Source of the DNA: Vitrella brassicaformis CCMP3155
Taxonomy: Eukaryota > Protista > Chromerida
Assembly: GCA_001179505.1 (NCBI GenBank)
Contig: CDMY01000986.1
Coordinates: 1 to 7,158, forward strand
Direction of reading: 5' to 3'
Length of the DNA: 7,158 nt
Shown one piece after another: positions 1,684 through 7,158 of this stretch (the stretch's first letter is position 1; every line of letters begins with the position of its first letter). The position numbers and the translations under genes are program-made. The notes below the pieces were generated by a model that saw only the letters and a list, made by a program, of their open reading frames with translations, was not told the origin of the DNA and did no database searches.

Positions 1684-1864
1684 CGCAGCTTCGACGAGAA
1701 GAGCTTGGCATCAGTGCGCATCCGATCGGGAGAGATCTGCCGACGATCGGAATTCAGCTCGCAGAGCAAAACGGAGGGGACGAATGGGACGCTCCGGCGA
1801 TGAAGGACGGTGGCCTTAGTGGCAGAGGGAAAGATCTTTTCGATTCATGAATTGCATCCTTGTG
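1684..1864. promoter_or_regulatory. Short head-to-head intergenic region, probable bidirectional promoter/5' UTRs of trmJ-like and TatD genes
   Basis: Divergent start codons at 1683 (-) and ~1865 (+) lie only ~181 bp apart. No specific element was identified. Confidence 0.5.
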
Positions 1865-3512
1865 ATGATGATGGCCTTCATCGACATCGCCGTCAACCTG
1901 ACAGATCCCATGTACCAGGGCATCTATCACGACAAGCAGCGGCACGAGGCGGACCTGCAAAGAGTGCTGGAGAGGGCAAAGGCCGCAGGCGTGCACAAGA
2001 TGATTGTCACAGGCACGCAGAGCAGACACACAGAATCAGTGAGTGAGATCTCTCTCTGGTGATTCACTGGTATCCATTGCATTGCAGGTGGCAGCTTGGA
2101 GGACAGCCAAAAGGCCATCGACCTCTGCAGGGAGTACGGTAAGCAGTGCATGGCATGGCATGGCAACCCCTTCAGAAACCATCCCCCCCATTTATTGATC
2201 CATTATGGTCACCTCCTTCCTTCATCCATCAGATCCGTCCGGCGGCGTGCTGTACTGCACTGTGGGCGTTCATCCGACCCGCTGCAATGACTTCATTGAC
2301 AAGGCAGAGACCCCCGAGGCACACCTGAGGGCGCTGCGGGAGCTGGTGGAGGGCAACCGGGACAGAGTGGTGGCCATCGGGGAGATTGGCCTTGGTACGT
2401 ACGTTGGCACAGAAACCGAGAGCATTGCTCAGCATTGTTGGCTGTGTTGTCATTGATTGGGTCTGCTTGCCTCACTCCTCAGATTTCGAGCGCGAGATGT
2501 TCTGTGTGGCTGACACGCAGAAACGGTACGAGAGAGGGCCGCGCATGGAGTGAGAGAGAGAGCGGCGGCCTGGCGTGTGTGTTGTGTTGTGGGTGTCAGG
2601 TTCTTCGAGGCGCACTTAGATCTTGTGGATGCTCTTGAGCTGCCGATGTTCCTGCACATGAGGGCGGCTGCCGACGCCTTCTGTGGTATCGATGGCCGCA
2701 AGCCTCGGTGCCAGCAGGGATGATGGCAATTTCGTGTTCTTCCGCTGCGATCATTGCAGACATCCTATCTCGGAATCGGCAGAAATGGGAGAGGGTTGGA
2801 GGGGTGTCGCACTCGTTCACCGGTGGGCAAACCCACACGGACGCACAGACGAGTGGAGTGGCTGCATGACGCGCTGCATTGGCTGGGTTTGTATGCTCAG
2901 GGACGGCAGAAGAGCTGCAGAAGGTCATTGATCTAGGCCTCTGCATCGGTAGAAAGAAAGGCTTCTCTCACCGCCCCGGAGTGTTCTGATGGATTTGATT
3001 GGCTCATGACCTGATCGATCAGGCCTGAATGGGTGTTCGCTCAAGACGGATGAGAACCTTGATGTGGCGGCACAGGTGCCGGAACATCTCGTCATGCTCG
3101 AAACAGGTCTGTCTGCAGCCCAAACCGACACGGGGCTCCTCGCTGCACATGTGTGTGTGTGTGTGTGTGTCCATGTCAGATGCCCCCTGGTGCGACATCC
3201 GCCCGACACACGCTTCCAGCAGTTTTGTCAAGACCGACATCGACTGCGTCAAGAAGCCCGAGAAATGGGAGCCGGCCAGGCAGGTCAAGGGGAGGAATGA
3301 GCCCTGCAACATGGTGCAGGTGGCGGAGGCGGTGTTCGGTGTGCGGGCTGCCAGGGGGAGGACAACACATGACTTCAACGCATTCTGCAACACGTGAGCG
3401 CCGCTGTGCATCCCGATTTGTGCGCGTGTGTGCACTCACTGGCTTGGTTCTGGTGTGGGTGTGCAGGGTGGTGTCCAACACGCTGCGGCTGTTCACCAAG
3501 CTGAAGGCCTAG
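1865..3512 (+). CDS. TATDN1: TatD-family DNase/exonuclease, TATDN1 type; 10 exons, ~312-314 aa
   Basis: Exons: 1865-2012, 2088-2138, 2233-2394, 2483-2525, 2600-2685, 2760-2822, 2901-2948, 3023-3106, 3180-3393, 3467-3512. Total 945 nt, stop TAG at 3510-3512; the start could be ATG 1847, 1865, 1868 or 1871. Spliced protein has FIDIAVNLTDPMYQG, IVTGGSLEDS, CTVGVHPTRC, VVAIGEIGLDFER, LPMFLHMR, GGVSHSFTG, IGLNGCSLKT, MLETDAPWC and KGRNEPC. These are the TATDN1 signature motifs with metal ligands E/H/H/D present. Intron 1 requires a GC donor. Confidence 0.93.
2013..2087 (+). other. Probable non-canonical GC-AG intron (TatD intron 1, 75 nt)
   Basis: ACAG|GCACGC...TTGCAG|GT joins to give the conserved VTGGSL. 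The nearby GTGAGT at 2039 is in the wrong phase, and GTGAGA at 2043 would insert ~10 aa into a conserved motif and leave an atypically short 45-nt intron. Confidence 0.65.
3150..3170. repeat. (GT)10 microsatellite in TatD intron 8
   Basis: t(gt)10 seen directly, just upstream of the acceptor. Confidence 0.9.
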
Positions 3513-3840
3513 GCGATTTTCATTGTGTGTCTGTGTGGGTTGACTGAGTATTTATTTGTGTGCGTGGCGTGGGGGAGAGAGTGGCTGCGTGACGGTTGAT
3601 GTGACTTGACAGAAAGGCACGCCAGGCCATCCGACAGACACGCATCAGTCAGTCCCCCCATGACAGCAAAATTAGCTAAGTCAGTCTTTGCACATCGATC
3701 AATCAGCATGGCATGCAGCAGAGGTTTGGCACCTCAAAGTGGGGTACACCCTCACAAACACGGATAAACACACAGCCCCTCCCTACACACACAAACAAAC
3801 CACTTAGCCCACACCCAGCTAGAAGGAGAGACCCACTCGA

Positions 3841-6395
3841 CTACTCTATGGTGAACTCTACAACGCCCTTATGTCGCCTAGTATCATCAATATCATCATC
3901 ATCAAGCCCATCATCCTCACTGCCGCCGCCATCGCCCTCGCCGCTCTGGGTGCGGCTGGGCAGGGCAATCCCGCCCGTGGTGCCCTGCCTGTCCCTCCCC
4001 CGCCCCCTCGGCTGCATCTCCTGCAGCATTCCCTTGTCCTCCTTCAGGGCCACATACCGCCGCTGACGCTGGCCGTAGCACACGTAGTGCTGACACAAGA
4101 TCACACAGCACCAAAATATCTGCCAACACAACACAACACAACACACACACACGAGGCACTGAATGAGTGGAACAAAGTGTGTGTGTGTGTCTGTGTGTGT
4201 CAAATAGGGGTTACTTACCGATGCTAGGCTGACGGCCATTTTGGGTATGTTGCCGAAGACGAAGGAGGAGTCGCCGTAGTGAAGGGCGTCGAGGACGTTC
4301 TGCAGCATCGAGAACAGACCACCGCACAGATCCAACTGGATGTGCTGAATCGCCATCCCTGTCAGAAAGACACACAGACACGGATGGTACCTACCGTGTG
4401 TCGCCCGCCGCTTGTTTGGCTTGGCACATCAATAGGTACTCACCATGTGTGGATCTGCGTGTGAAGTTGAGCTTCACTTGGGGGATGTACTTGATCACCG
4501 TAATGCCCGCCTTCACCAGACCTGCACACACACACAAAAGACACACACACAGGGGATGTTCCCTCCACTCGCCCATTCCCTGCAGGTATTCCGTCCCCTC
4601 CCTCCCCCAAGCCGCCCACCAAGGTAGGTGACGACGCTGTATGTCTGCCAGGCGACCTTCTCCCTCCCCTGCGTCAGCGGCGTCAGGTCCACCCACGGCA
4701 TCACGCCCCCAAAAGCCAGCAGGGATTGGAACACAAGTCCCGCAAACATGAGGAAGCACAGCAGCAGGCACGTCCTCGAGTGGATCTGCCCGCCCCGGTG
4801 CAGCGACTGTATCTGCATCTCAATCAGCATCGTGGCCGCCATGCTGTGGCACGCGAAGAAGACGTCATGCGGTTCCACGGCTGACGGCAGGGCGTATCGC
4901 GTCTCGAGGAAGAATGACGAGACCGTGTAGAGGCTGTAGGCCGAGTAGCCCACGACGTTGTAGAAGTTGAGGTCCAGGCTGTAGCCCTCCACGCTCTTCC
5001 GCTGGTGGTTCAGTATCACCTGGGGGTAGAAACAGACCGTCCAGCAGAAGACGTACGCCACACCACACAGGAAGGACAGCACCCCCAAGACGCTCGAGAA
5101 CTGACCCCCAGCCGTCGCGTCGCCTTCGTCAACACCCCGCAGCAGTGGCGCCATGTACGCCTTCACCGTCGACACCCCTTCACCCGACTTGGACCGCACC
5201 TTGTAGAAGGCCCGCCACTTCTGCCCCGTCACAATCACCGGCAGGTTGGCCTCCTGCCGCCTCAGGCGGCCAGCAAACATCACTCCAGCCACACAGCACT
5301 TGAAGTCCGGCTCAGTCGTCATCAGCTCTCGGCAGGAGAAAGCAAGAGGGGCCTCGCCGGTGGTGGTGCGTGCCACATTAAGTGTGAGCAGCCAGGAGGT
5401 CTCTCTGACAGCCACGATAACACGGCCGGTCAGCCCGTCGCCCGGGATGGCGTCGATTGCGTCCAGCTGCAGGCCGCTCACGCCGGGCGGTATCTTGCCG
5501 ATGTGCCAGGCGATCTCCTTGTCGCACGTCGATACGTTGAACCTCTGCAGGTACTGCAGGGTCTCGGCGTCGAGCACGTGGATGCTCTCCGACCGATTGG
5601 TCAGCAGCACATAGCGGCCGAAGTGCGTAAGGCCCCAGGGGCCCTTGCTGATGCCCTGGGTGACTTGTGCCGACAGCGGGGCGTTCGATGTGACGACAGG
5701 GTGTGCCGGGGGGAGAGGGACTGTCACGAGCTCAGCGATGGGGGGCTCGGTAGCGGTGGCGTTGTCGGCTCTCTGAGGTAGCGTGATGACGGCGATCTCC
5801 GACCAGTTGCTTGGCGAGAGGGTCAGCCCCCTGAGGGTCCATCCAGCGGGAAAGGCCACCTCCTGCACCATGCGGACGTCCAGCGCCTTCTTGCCGCCCT
5901 GCTGCCTCATCCGCCAGACGAAGAGCTTGCCGTCCTCTGTGCTGTTGCCTGCAATGGAGGTCTCGATGAAGTGCGTGTCGTTGATTCGGGCGAGGCCCTG
6001 CGTGTTGGCGTCGGTGCGGTGGGTGAGGGACTTGCCCTCGACGCGCAGATGGAAGAAAGGCTCCTGACAGGGAGGACACACACAGACATCCATCCATCCA
6101 GCCACCCACGAGCAGTGTTCCACCCACTTCGGCCTCCCACCTTCTTGTCGGTACTCTTCTTGCTCGTTCGTTGCAGCAGCGCCTTAGCCTGTGCCGCGTG
6201 CACCTGCTCCATTATAGCTGTCGTCTGCGTGCCGTCGAAGACCCTCTCGCCAGCACCCTTCAAGTTGCTCTGATCATCAGCATCATCGCCATCAGCATCA
6301 TCGCCTCGCTGTGACCGGGCGAGGGCCGCAGCGAGAGCAACAGCAGCGATGCACAACAGACATGACGTGAGGCGCATCTGCCGCCGCGGCGGCAT
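3841..6395 (-). CDS. CTNS: Fusion protein: signal peptide + glutaminyl cyclase (glutamine cyclotransferase)-like beta-propeller + cystinosin-like 7-TM PQ-loop transporter; 5 exons, ~731 aa
   Basis: Exons in transcript order: 6141-6395, 4620-6063, 4444-4521, 4219-4358, 3841-4119. Total 2196 nt, GT-AG introns of 77, 98, 85 and 99 nt, stop TAG at 3841-3843; alternative starts at 6416 or 6377. Signal peptide MRLTSCLLCIAAVALAAALA. Cystinosin motifs: CWTVCFYPQVILNHQRKSVEGYSLD, EPHDVFFACH, VKAGITVIKYIPQVKLNFTRRSTHG, QLDLCGGLFSMLQ, FGNIPK and QHYVCY. The symbol applies to the C-terminal half only. Confidence 0.88.
4051..5100 (-). other. Cystinosin-like PQ-loop transmembrane domain (two PQ motifs; spans introns)
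   Basis: First PQ is FYPQ (YPQ codons 5020-5028) and second is YIPQ (4478-4489). There are seven hydrophobic segments, and the TM7 region aligns without gaps to human cystinosin K335-Y357. Confidence 0.92.
4124..4200. repeat. Compound simple repeats (CAACA)4/(CA)n and (GT)n in last intron of fusion gene
   Basis: caacacaacacaacacaacacacacacac at 4124-4152 and gtgtgtgtgtgtgtctgtgtgtgt at 4177-4200, which are mutually complementary. Confidence 0.85.
5197..6054 (-). other. Type I (plant/bacterial) glutaminyl cyclase-like beta-propeller domain, luminal, probably catalytically degenerate
   Basis: Collinear matches to type I QC motifs across ~285 aa: HRTDANTQGLARINDTHFIETS (cf. HDP.AFTQGL....DTL.EST), TLRGLTL (FGEGLTL), GPWGLTHFGRYVLLTNRSESIHVLDAETL (GWGL..DG..L..SDG...LY..DP.T), LDAID (LNELE), VAGV (LNGI) and VIVTGQKWRAFYKV (FVTGK.W..LFEI). 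Six N-glycosylation sequons: NDT, NST, NWS, NAT, NRS, NVS. Confidence 0.75.
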
Positions 6396-6723
6396 CCGTA
6401 ACCGCCAGTGACTCATTCTTCCGCTGCACTTCGTTGACAAGTGCTGAACCGCATAGATTTCGACGGATCTTGGCCCTGCTGCTCGCCTGTTAGTCCAGTA
6501 TGCCGTTCTTCGGCCAAGAGAGGCTCCGATCTCTCTGTTTGCGTTTTCTTTTCAAGAGTTAGAGCGGAGACCGAGTTACACGGGCGAGATCTACGAGACA
6601 TGAGTTTGCGATGGTTGTGGACTCAAACTTGCGTGTCCATGAGACCTCCGTCGTCACTGAATGCTTCTTTCGGCTTCGTCACATTCCTACTCGCTACCCC
6701 GAGCTACTGCTGATACTCCAACT

Positions 6724-6739
6724 GGTTATGAACGCCCAC
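6724..6739 (+). other. Putative primer-binding site complementary to the anticodon arm of initiator tRNA-Met
   Basis: GGTTATGAACGCCCAC is the reverse complement of GTGGGC-TCATAACC plus an AC insertion. Its position between an LTR-like end and gag fits a PBS. Confidence 0.45.
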
Positions 6740-6865
6740 ATCGGGTGTGATGAGCCATCTGGCGTGCCTTCCCTCACCATCTGTCGAGACACCATCTTCC
6801 CGGTGATGATGACCGAGCAACGTGATGTCATCCAACAAATGCCACACAGTGAGTTGTGGTACAAG

Positions 6866-7158
6866 ATGGCCGATGGCATCGCCGCCAACCCTCCTCGCTT
6901 CAGCGGCAAAGAGAGCGACTACCACAGCTGGCGTCAGTCGTTCGCTGGCATGTTCTATGGCATCGATGGCATGGCCAAGTACTTCCATCCGTCAACCGAT
7001 GACGAGCTGTCGGTGACGAGTCGCTCACAGATGTCCAACGCCGCAACATGAGGATGGAAAGATGGATGTTGTGGAGAGCACTGGACAGGGCCACAGAGGG
7101 CAAGGACTGTCAAGGAACGGTCCAGGAGGCAACCACCACACACGATGGGTATGTGTCT
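6866..7158 (+). pseudogene. gag: Copia-like gag N-terminal region with a -1 frameshift near 7006
   Basis: MADGIAANPPRFSGKESDYHSWRQSF matches the gag PxFxG....Y..W motif. That frame stops at 7049-7051, but the -1 frame from ~7006 reads AVGDESLTDVQRRNMRMERWMLWRALDRATEGKDCQGTVQEATTTHDGYVS, resembling the copia gag L..L...T.G.....V......DGY.AW motif. The start could be earlier (ATG 6728 or 6806). Confidence 0.55.

Follow-up and report, generated by a model that had tools for sequence, protein, structure and literature searches.

Cystinosins, the lysosomal cystine transporters of the PQ-loop class (TC 2.A.43), differ from one another in what they display on the membrane's luminal face. Human cystinosin (CTNS/SLC66A4; structures 8dke and 8dyp) has a seven-transmembrane (7-TM) fold with two PQ-loops, and its lumen-facing N-terminus bears a glycosylated extra domain of ~100 residues behind a signal peptide. 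The cystinosins of Arabidopsis (7zk1) and of the yeast Ers1 type share the transporter core and its conserved binding and gating residues (PMC9385667), but are without any luminal N-terminal domain. Type I glutaminyl cyclases (QCs), represented by the papaya (2iwa/2faw), Zymomonas (3nol), Xanthomonas (3mbr) and Plasmodium enzymes, are free-standing or singly anchored proteins. They are five-bladed propellers of the plant/bacterial kind and turn N-terminal Gln into pyroglutamate. The two families appear to meet in one gene of Vitrella brassicaformis, a photosynthetic, free-living chromerid alga and kin of the apicomplexan parasites. The gene lies on the minus strand of scaffold CDMY01000986.1 of V. 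brassicaformis CCMP3155, and the window analyzed here is that entire scaffold of 7,158 bases. Its reading frame runs from a signal peptide through a domain of ~290 residues that very probably descends from a type I QC, and on into a cystinosin-type transporter. The overall reading that we favor, with a probability of roughly 0.65, is that the product is a cystinosin-type exporter bearing a passive, glycan-covered, non-catalytic ectodomain derived from a QC.

The gene corresponds to database entry CEM38460.1 / UniProt A0A0G4H4L0, a protein of 738 amino acids that carries automatic Pfam labels and the name 'uncharacterized protein'. It extends from 6416/6395 to 3841 and consists of five exons (6395 or 6416-6141, 6063-4620, 4521-4444, 4358-4219 and 4119-3841) separated by four introns, all GT-AG. 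The spliced frame of 2,196 nucleotides (nt) encodes 731 residues from the ATG at 6395, and an in-frame ATG at 6416, 21 nt upstream, yields the 738-residue database model. The second ATG may be the start used, because a short upstream open reading frame (ORF) in the 5' leader (13 codons, 6413-6454, minus strand, ATG at 6454) has a stop codon that overlaps the first in-frame ATG as ATGA. The features of the gene are:

6417-6553, minus: 5' mRNA leader (RNA contigs reaching 6542 and 6553; sequence)
6141-6416, minus: exon 1, encoding the signal peptide (about 6395-6318), then acidic residues and a helical spacer of short length (sequence; RNA joint 6140/6062)
6064-6140, minus: intron 1 (GT..AG), with a GGAT/TG microsatellite inside (absent from RNA contigs, present in DNA contigs)
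5191-6063, minus: predicted QC-like (Glu_cyclase_2-type) propeller, residues 86-376 of the 731-residue model, beginning at the first codon of exon 2 and containing the six N-glycosylation sequons (Pfam, own HMM, hhalign, model)
5104-5190, minus: linker between propeller and TM1, ~29 residues, with internal Met389 (sequence; low-confidence helix in the model)
4620-5103, minus: cystinosin domain part 1, TM1 to ~TM4 and the next loop, within exon 2, with W426 and D485 (Pfam PQ-loop; alignment to 8dke)
about 4911-5079, minus: PQ-loop 1 (Pfam)
4444-4521, minus: exon 3, with TM5, the beginning of PQ-loop 2, K570, K577 and Y-I-P-Q-V (alignment; RNA-confirmed junctions)
4219-4358, minus: exon 4, with TM6 and the following loop, D602, Q612 and K632 (alignment; RNA joint 4357/4443)
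3841-4119, minus: exon 5, with TM7 (C643), the cytosolic tail and the stop codon at 3843-3841 (sequence, alignment)
within exon 5, minus: order of the tail, Y-V-A-L (4056-4045), a Gly/Arg-rich stretch, an acidic cluster, stop (sequence)
3464-3840, minus: 3' untranslated region (UTR), overlapping the convergent TatD gene at its 3' end (RNA contigs running into spliced TatD exons)

This is one real, expressed, single-copy gene with one transcript joining both halves. A Logan contig of 3,704 nt from RNA run SRR646408 matches the window at 100% identity, lacks exactly the four predicted introns and reaches 6542; a second RNA run yields an equivalent contig of 3,644 nt that extends up to 6553 and shows the joints 6140/6062 and 4443/4357 directly; and a JGI transcriptome contig, from a third RNA data set, confirms the same splicing. 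The DNA contigs retain the introns, run collinearly with the scaffold and have even, single-copy depth, and no diverged second genomic copy was found among them at >=80% likeness; there were no variant contigs, and one locus was found.

Because the RNA contigs also continue into the neighboring TatD gene, contig continuity by itself is no proof of a single transcript, and one might suspect an annotation or assembly artefact that fuses two genes. However, a merged gene model is excluded because the propeller-transporter junction (about 5104-5190) sits within exon 2, whose 1,444 nt without a stop codon (6063-4620) start in the first strand of the propeller and continue into the TM bundle. In addition, the frame is open from signal peptide to tail only once four canonical introns are taken out, the three RNA data sets remove exactly those, and the DNA contigs show the same order as the scaffold. 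An artefact of this kind is therefore extremely improbable. The first-pass annotation of this DNA had argued from the stop-free exon for a single-gene fusion, and this stands: the exons, signal peptide, acidic linker, sequons, PQ-loops and YxxPhi tail that it listed are all where it placed them (by sequence, Pfam and RNA contigs), and the transcripts span both halves, spliced as predicted. The internal Met389 of the linker could in principle be the start of a transporter-only product, and an extra internal transcription start may be compatible with the RNA contigs. A 484-residue database variant (P0009) was considered as a transporter-rich isoform and rejected, since that gene call begins after a run of N in the transcriptome scaffold.

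The C-terminal half resembles cystinosins throughout. It contains two PQ-loop stretches (93.7 bits with Pfam PF04193; P-Q at residues 432-433 and 580-581), and searches of PDB sequences with phmmer matched residues 120-366 of human cystinosin 8dke at E 1.9e-29 and Arabidopsis cystinosin 7zk1 at E 6e-27. The seven-TM core aligns end to end with the solved cystinosins, with about 31-33% identity to the human protein over TM1-7. Key residues of human cystinosin are W138, K273, K280 and D305 in the binding site, D205 and K335 in the luminal gate, and Q315 (PMC9385667). The equivalents of all these are kept in Vitrella (W138=W426, D205=D485, K273=K570, K280=K577, D305=D602, Q315=Q612 and K335=K632), which amounts to seven of eight key residues; the other is Asp346 on TM7, which contacts Asp305 in cystinosin (PMC9385667). 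It is an Asp in human cystinosin and in four other cystinosins aligned, and Cys643 in Vitrella. The Vitrella protein also differs from the human one in its longer TM4-TM5 loop and its long acidic C-tail.

The human protein is sorted to lysosomes by a tail signal, GYDQL, and by YFPQA, which lies in the third cytosolic loop (PMC5297682), and both have counterparts here. The YxxPhi sequence Y-V-A-L stands 12 residues past the conserved Q-H that ends TM7 and is the positional counterpart of GYDQL (the signal lies about 11-12 residues past TM7 in the two proteins), and Y-I-P-Q-V occupies the position of YFPQA, so that the third cytosolic loop has a Y-x-P-Q-x motif in both. The C-terminal half is thus probably a cystinosin-type exporter and is predicted to be functional.

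The ancestry of the N-terminal domain is harder to read. An exhaustive phmmer search against 1.84 billion cluster representatives returned no genuine sequence relative of it; two extra hits, to bacterial Calx-beta or DUF11/DUF7901 repeat proteins, were rejected as spurious, with short beta-strand stretches matched repeatedly. Likewise, phmmer against PDB sequences found no match for the domain among solved QC structures. The first-pass annotation had proposed HMMER searches with PF05096 and PF04193, and both give matches. That to PF05096 (Glu_cyclase_2) scores 28.3 bits against a cut-off of 22.3 (E 1.5e-6), over 46 residues only (profile positions 122-167 of 249). For a broader comparison, a bacterial/archaeal genome collection was scanned for a DNA pattern encoding E-G-W-G-L-T-x-D-G, the ORFs around the matches were extracted, and 62 complete bacterial sequences, all strong PF05096 members, were aligned into a QC profile. 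This profile matches the Vitrella protein in three collinear blocks, namely residues 74-127 (the H-x3-A-x-T-Q-G-L region), 226-269 (the W-G-L-T ... L-D-x-E-T region) and 360-376 (the C-terminal V-T-G-x-x-W-x-x-F region). The score of the domain is 26.9 bits, and the best of 5,000 shuffles reached 7.4 bits. With hhalign, 222 columns of the same profile (QC positions 34-268) align with residues 20-317 of P0001 at E 2.2e-5 and a probability of 76%. Features from a protein language model rank QC clusters first (0.91, with 191 of 256 features shared), and the ten best named neighbors are all QCs or members of the QC clan.

Structure prediction gives a compatible picture. Modeled by AlphaFold2 (AF2) from its single sequence, the domain has a pLDDT of 37.7 and is almost all-beta; when the QC alignment is supplied (P0001:20-345), pLDDT rises to 67.7 with a pTM of 0.69 and about 20 strands. 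The six best PDB matches of the latter model are all QCs (3nol, 3mbr, 2iwa, 2faw and both chains of 3nok; TM-score 0.73 by target to 3nol/3mbr), and QC families also head its matches in AFDB and the ESM Atlas. This model is not independent of the alignment and indicates compatibility with a five-blade propeller. The Vitrella domain is only 13-18% identical to type I QCs and carries a Pro-rich insertion of ~35 residues in the second blade region, which is disordered in the model (piece residues 118-141, about 198-221 of the 731-residue model).

These data might also be explained if the domain were an unrelated all-beta or propeller domain in which QC signals had arisen by chance or convergence. 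Such an origin would fit the failure of exhaustive phmmer to recover any QC, the lack of a sequence match to solved QCs, the shortness of the Pfam match, the modest hhalign probability, and the need for a QC alignment to obtain a good model. However, three QC-specific motifs in the right order and spacing, a profile score that no shuffle approached, a Pfam E-value of 1.5e-6, and the unanimity of the named language-model neighbors all argue against it, and we consider a non-QC origin improbable. The N-terminal domain is, with high though not complete confidence, an extremely diverged descendant of a type I QC, as judged from sequence comparison and modeling.

Descent from an enzyme does not establish that the domain is one. 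The active site of papaya QC comprises F22, Q24, F67, E69, W83, W110, N155, W169 and K225 (PMC9436314, citing Wintjens 2006), and the active Plasmodium QC has counterparts of all nine (PMC9436314). These residues were placed on the 62-QC profile through alignment to the papaya chain and fall within recognizable motifs: F22 and Q24 in A-F-T-Q-G-L, F67 and E69 in F-G-E-G, W83 in L-T-W, W110 in G-W-G-L, N155 in L-N-E-L-E, W169 in A-N-V-W, and K225 in T-G-K. Their Vitrella equivalents, in papaya order, are N105, Q107, F156, A158, W172, W228, D286, R305 and Q366. Four of the nine are therefore kept (the equivalents of Q24, F67, W83 and W110), or three of nine under the hhalign alignment. The equivalents of Glu69 (FGEG), Asn155 (LNELE) and Lys225 (TGK) are 100% invariant in the 62 bacterial QCs, and all three are lost in Vitrella under both MAFFT and hhalign: E69 is replaced by Ala (Arg by hhalign), N155 by Asp (or a gap) and K225 by Gln. 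F22 and W169 are replaced by Asn and Arg. Among QC columns with at least 85% conservation, 25 of 56 are kept in Vitrella, and nearly all of these are Gly, Trp, Thr, Leu or His. The earlier claim of collinear QC motifs is therefore borne out in part: three collinear blocks are present and withstand the shuffle control, but what they preserve is the structural skeleton only.

Because the equivalents of Glu69, Asn155, Lys225, Phe22 and Trp169 are replaced, the domain is most likely not an enzyme; it is predicted to be a pseudoenzyme without catalytic activity. It could instead be argued that a working glutaminyl/glutamyl cyclase, or a related cyclotransferase, is tethered to the lysosomal membrane by the transporter. 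The domain does pass the PF05096 cut-off, and Plasmodium, from the sister lineage, has a type I QC that is both membrane-anchored and active (PMC9436314). However, the five replacements include the Glu, Asn and Lys that are kept in Plasmodium, and double mutation of the F22 and Q24 equivalents abolishes the activity of the Plasmodium enzyme (PMC9436314); in Vitrella the F22 equivalent is already Asn. An active tethered enzyme is accordingly a poor prospect, though a slightly better one than a non-QC origin.

Several features point to the lumen as the location of the predicted pseudoenzyme. The leader is Arg-rich at its start and continues through a hydrophobic core of 18 residues to a cleavage-type site, A-L-A|R-S, beyond which the sequence is acidic. 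A plastid-targeting leader was considered and rejected, the region behind the signal peptide being strongly acidic; the sequence fits entry into the secretory pathway rather than a plastid transit peptide. The luminal part contains six N-x-S/T sequons, whereas shuffles lead one to expect 1.5 (P = 0.0013), and in three places a conserved QC loop has been turned into a sequon: at N125, which follows the Y-E-S-T-G region, at N171, which precedes W172, and at N241, which replaces S-D-G-S. The propeller should therefore face the lumen, the same side as the N-terminus of animal cystinosins, as the first-pass annotation had also concluded. Because active-site losses, loops turned into sequons and sequon enrichment coincide, we read the overall pattern as the signature of a glycosylated luminal pseudoenzyme.

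The favored model can then be stated as follows. The protein would be a cystinosin-type proton/cystine exporter of a lysosome-like or vacuolar membrane, with its luminal N-terminus extended by a five-bladed propeller derived from a type I QC. The signal peptide would carry the propeller into the lumen of the endoplasmic reticulum, consistent with the lumen-facing N-terminus of cystinosin TM1, and sorting to an acidic compartment would depend on the YVAL tail and YIPQV loop, in the manner of GYDQL and YFPQA in the human protein. In that compartment, the propeller would be a heavily N-glycosylated, non-catalytic ectodomain standing in for the glycosylated N-terminal domain of animal cystinosins, to which it is unrelated; the human luminal domain has no sequence similarity to the Vitrella domain, the PDB alignments beginning at human residue 120. 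The propeller would provide stability, protease shielding and possibly a docking surface, and the 7-TM part would transport by itself. A passive role is preferred because deletion of the luminal N-terminal domain of human cystinosin leaves the transport kinetics (Km) unchanged, and because Arabidopsis and other plant cystinosins are without such a domain (PMC9385667).

A more active role for the propeller, which the first-pass annotation had suggested as a sensing or substrate-delivery cap, has also been weighed. The remodeled QC pocket might bind a luminal molecule (cystine, a peptide with N-terminal Gln or Glu, or a gamma-glutamyl or cysteinyl peptide) and then gate, regulate or feed the transporter below. 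The pocket-lining equivalents of Q24, F67, W83 and W110 are kept and the catalytic polar residues lost, a pattern common in pseudoenzymes that keep binding, and the short linker of 29 residues keeps the propeller near TM1. However, the retained W172 lies within the sequon N171-W-S, where a glycan would crowd the pocket, and the human N-terminal domain has no effect on transport kinetics (PMC9385667). A ligand-binding cap is thus unlikely, although it deserves some attention. In its boldest form, this idea would make the propeller an enzyme-derived luminal receptor whose aromatic/Gln pocket captures a ligand and hands it over to the cystinosin pore or opens the pore allosterically, and we regard this as rather doubtful. 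It is equally doubtful that the ligands would be cystine or the short Gln-, gamma-glutamyl- and cysteinyl-peptides released by vacuolar proteolysis or glutathione breakdown. If the luminal-receptor reading were true, a head for capturing or sensing substrate would for the first time be found built into a PQ-loop transporter.

In a broader sense, there is precedent for this domain order in NPC1, in which a glycosylated luminal N-terminal domain stands ahead of the membrane domain in the same chain and binds substrate. The folds are unrelated, and substrate binding, shown for NPC1, is hypothetical in the Vitrella protein.

A number of points weigh against the passive-ectodomain reading. The transporter half scores 135.5 bits with NCBIfam TIGR00951 'lysosomal cystine transporter', below the cut-off of 192.35, although profile positions 6-233 of 233 are aligned; substrate or coupling could therefore differ, and with Cys643 in place of Asp an altered coupling is conceivable. 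The propeller fold rests on the model made with the QC alignment, given the low confidence of the single-sequence prediction, and the hhalign probability is well short of certainty. The MAFFT and hhalign alignments disagree in blades 2 and 4, so that whether F67 counts as retained turns on the choice between them. The survival of four pocket residues may mean that the pocket is still in use. Finally, the searches turned up no orthologue against which purifying selection on the propeller could be gauged.

The first-pass annotation knew of no description of this architecture, and neither a description nor a second example has turned up in protein libraries, metagenomes, 80 cystinosin loci or the literature, in a setting where protists are poorly sampled. 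Word-index searches, which are insensitive, with exon 2, the transporter region and the N-terminal domain recovered only the protein itself and ordinary cystinosins. A metagenome scan found no relative of exon 2. Scanning with a cystinosin alignment gave the 80 closest environmental cystinosin loci, at 29-37% identity, and a QC-like segment was absent from every frame of all 80. In the ESM Atlas, which comprises only clusters of at least 50 members, no cluster resembled the whole protein above 0.67, and no paper was found that links either glutaminyl cyclase or Vitrella to cystinosin or the PQ-loop. The cystinosin-QC architecture is real and, so far as seen, apparently unique to Vitrella.

Two of the environmental cystinosin loci (L182:430-2820 and L167:47-1612) have other long N-terminal extensions, one a Ser/Thr-rich low-complexity region of ~540 residues and the other Cys-rich with extra hydrophobic segments. 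For this reason, N-terminal elaboration of cystinosins is not rare in protists, though the QC domain is. Outside the window, AFDB entry A0A0G4F621 is an uncharacterized protein of 833 residues, with an accession from the range of the chromerid proteomes and a QC-like fold at 42-301; the propeller could stem from its lineage, or it could be another protein to which a QC is fused.

The remainder of the scaffold contains two other genes and some repetitive DNA. A multi-exon gene for a TatD-type DNase (1772-3512, plus strand, product of 320 residues) converges on the cystinosin gene, and short-read RNA assemblies fuse the two transcripts because the 3' end of TatD and the 3' UTR of the cystinosin gene overlap. 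At 185-1469 on the minus strand is a gene for a SpoU-type RNA methyltransferase, with Pfam PF00588 matched in two ORF pieces and a database model of 351 residues. A dispersed repeat (6556-7158) begins sharply at 6556/6557, just upstream of the mRNA start. Its first part (6557-6600) is common to many DNA and RNA contigs that diverge below it, with a summed depth of about 20-30x single-copy, and an ORF of 146 residues within it (6611-7051, plus strand) has no Pfam match. The repeat probably explains the end of the scaffold. The GGAT/TG microsatellite in intron 1 (6076-6111) is common to very many contigs, with a summed depth of about 90x single-copy, and TG/CA-rich tracts are also present in introns 2 and 4.

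These results come from one species, and the protein was already in UniProt. The cystinosin and QC families are themselves known, and what is new is the type of luminal domain on a cystinosin. The N-terminal half appears to be a clear case of a type I QC turned pseudoenzyme, a class that was not found described for this fold in the papers searched. The function of the luminal N-terminal domain of cystinosin is a standing question, given that the human domain is dispensable for transport kinetics and plants do without one. Vitrella has independently placed a different domain, apparently enzyme-derived and rich in sequons, at the same position, which suggests by analogy that some luminal ectodomain is repeatedly useful on a cystinosin transporter. 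The Vitrella gene thereby offers a second natural system for asking why cystinosin bears a luminal domain.

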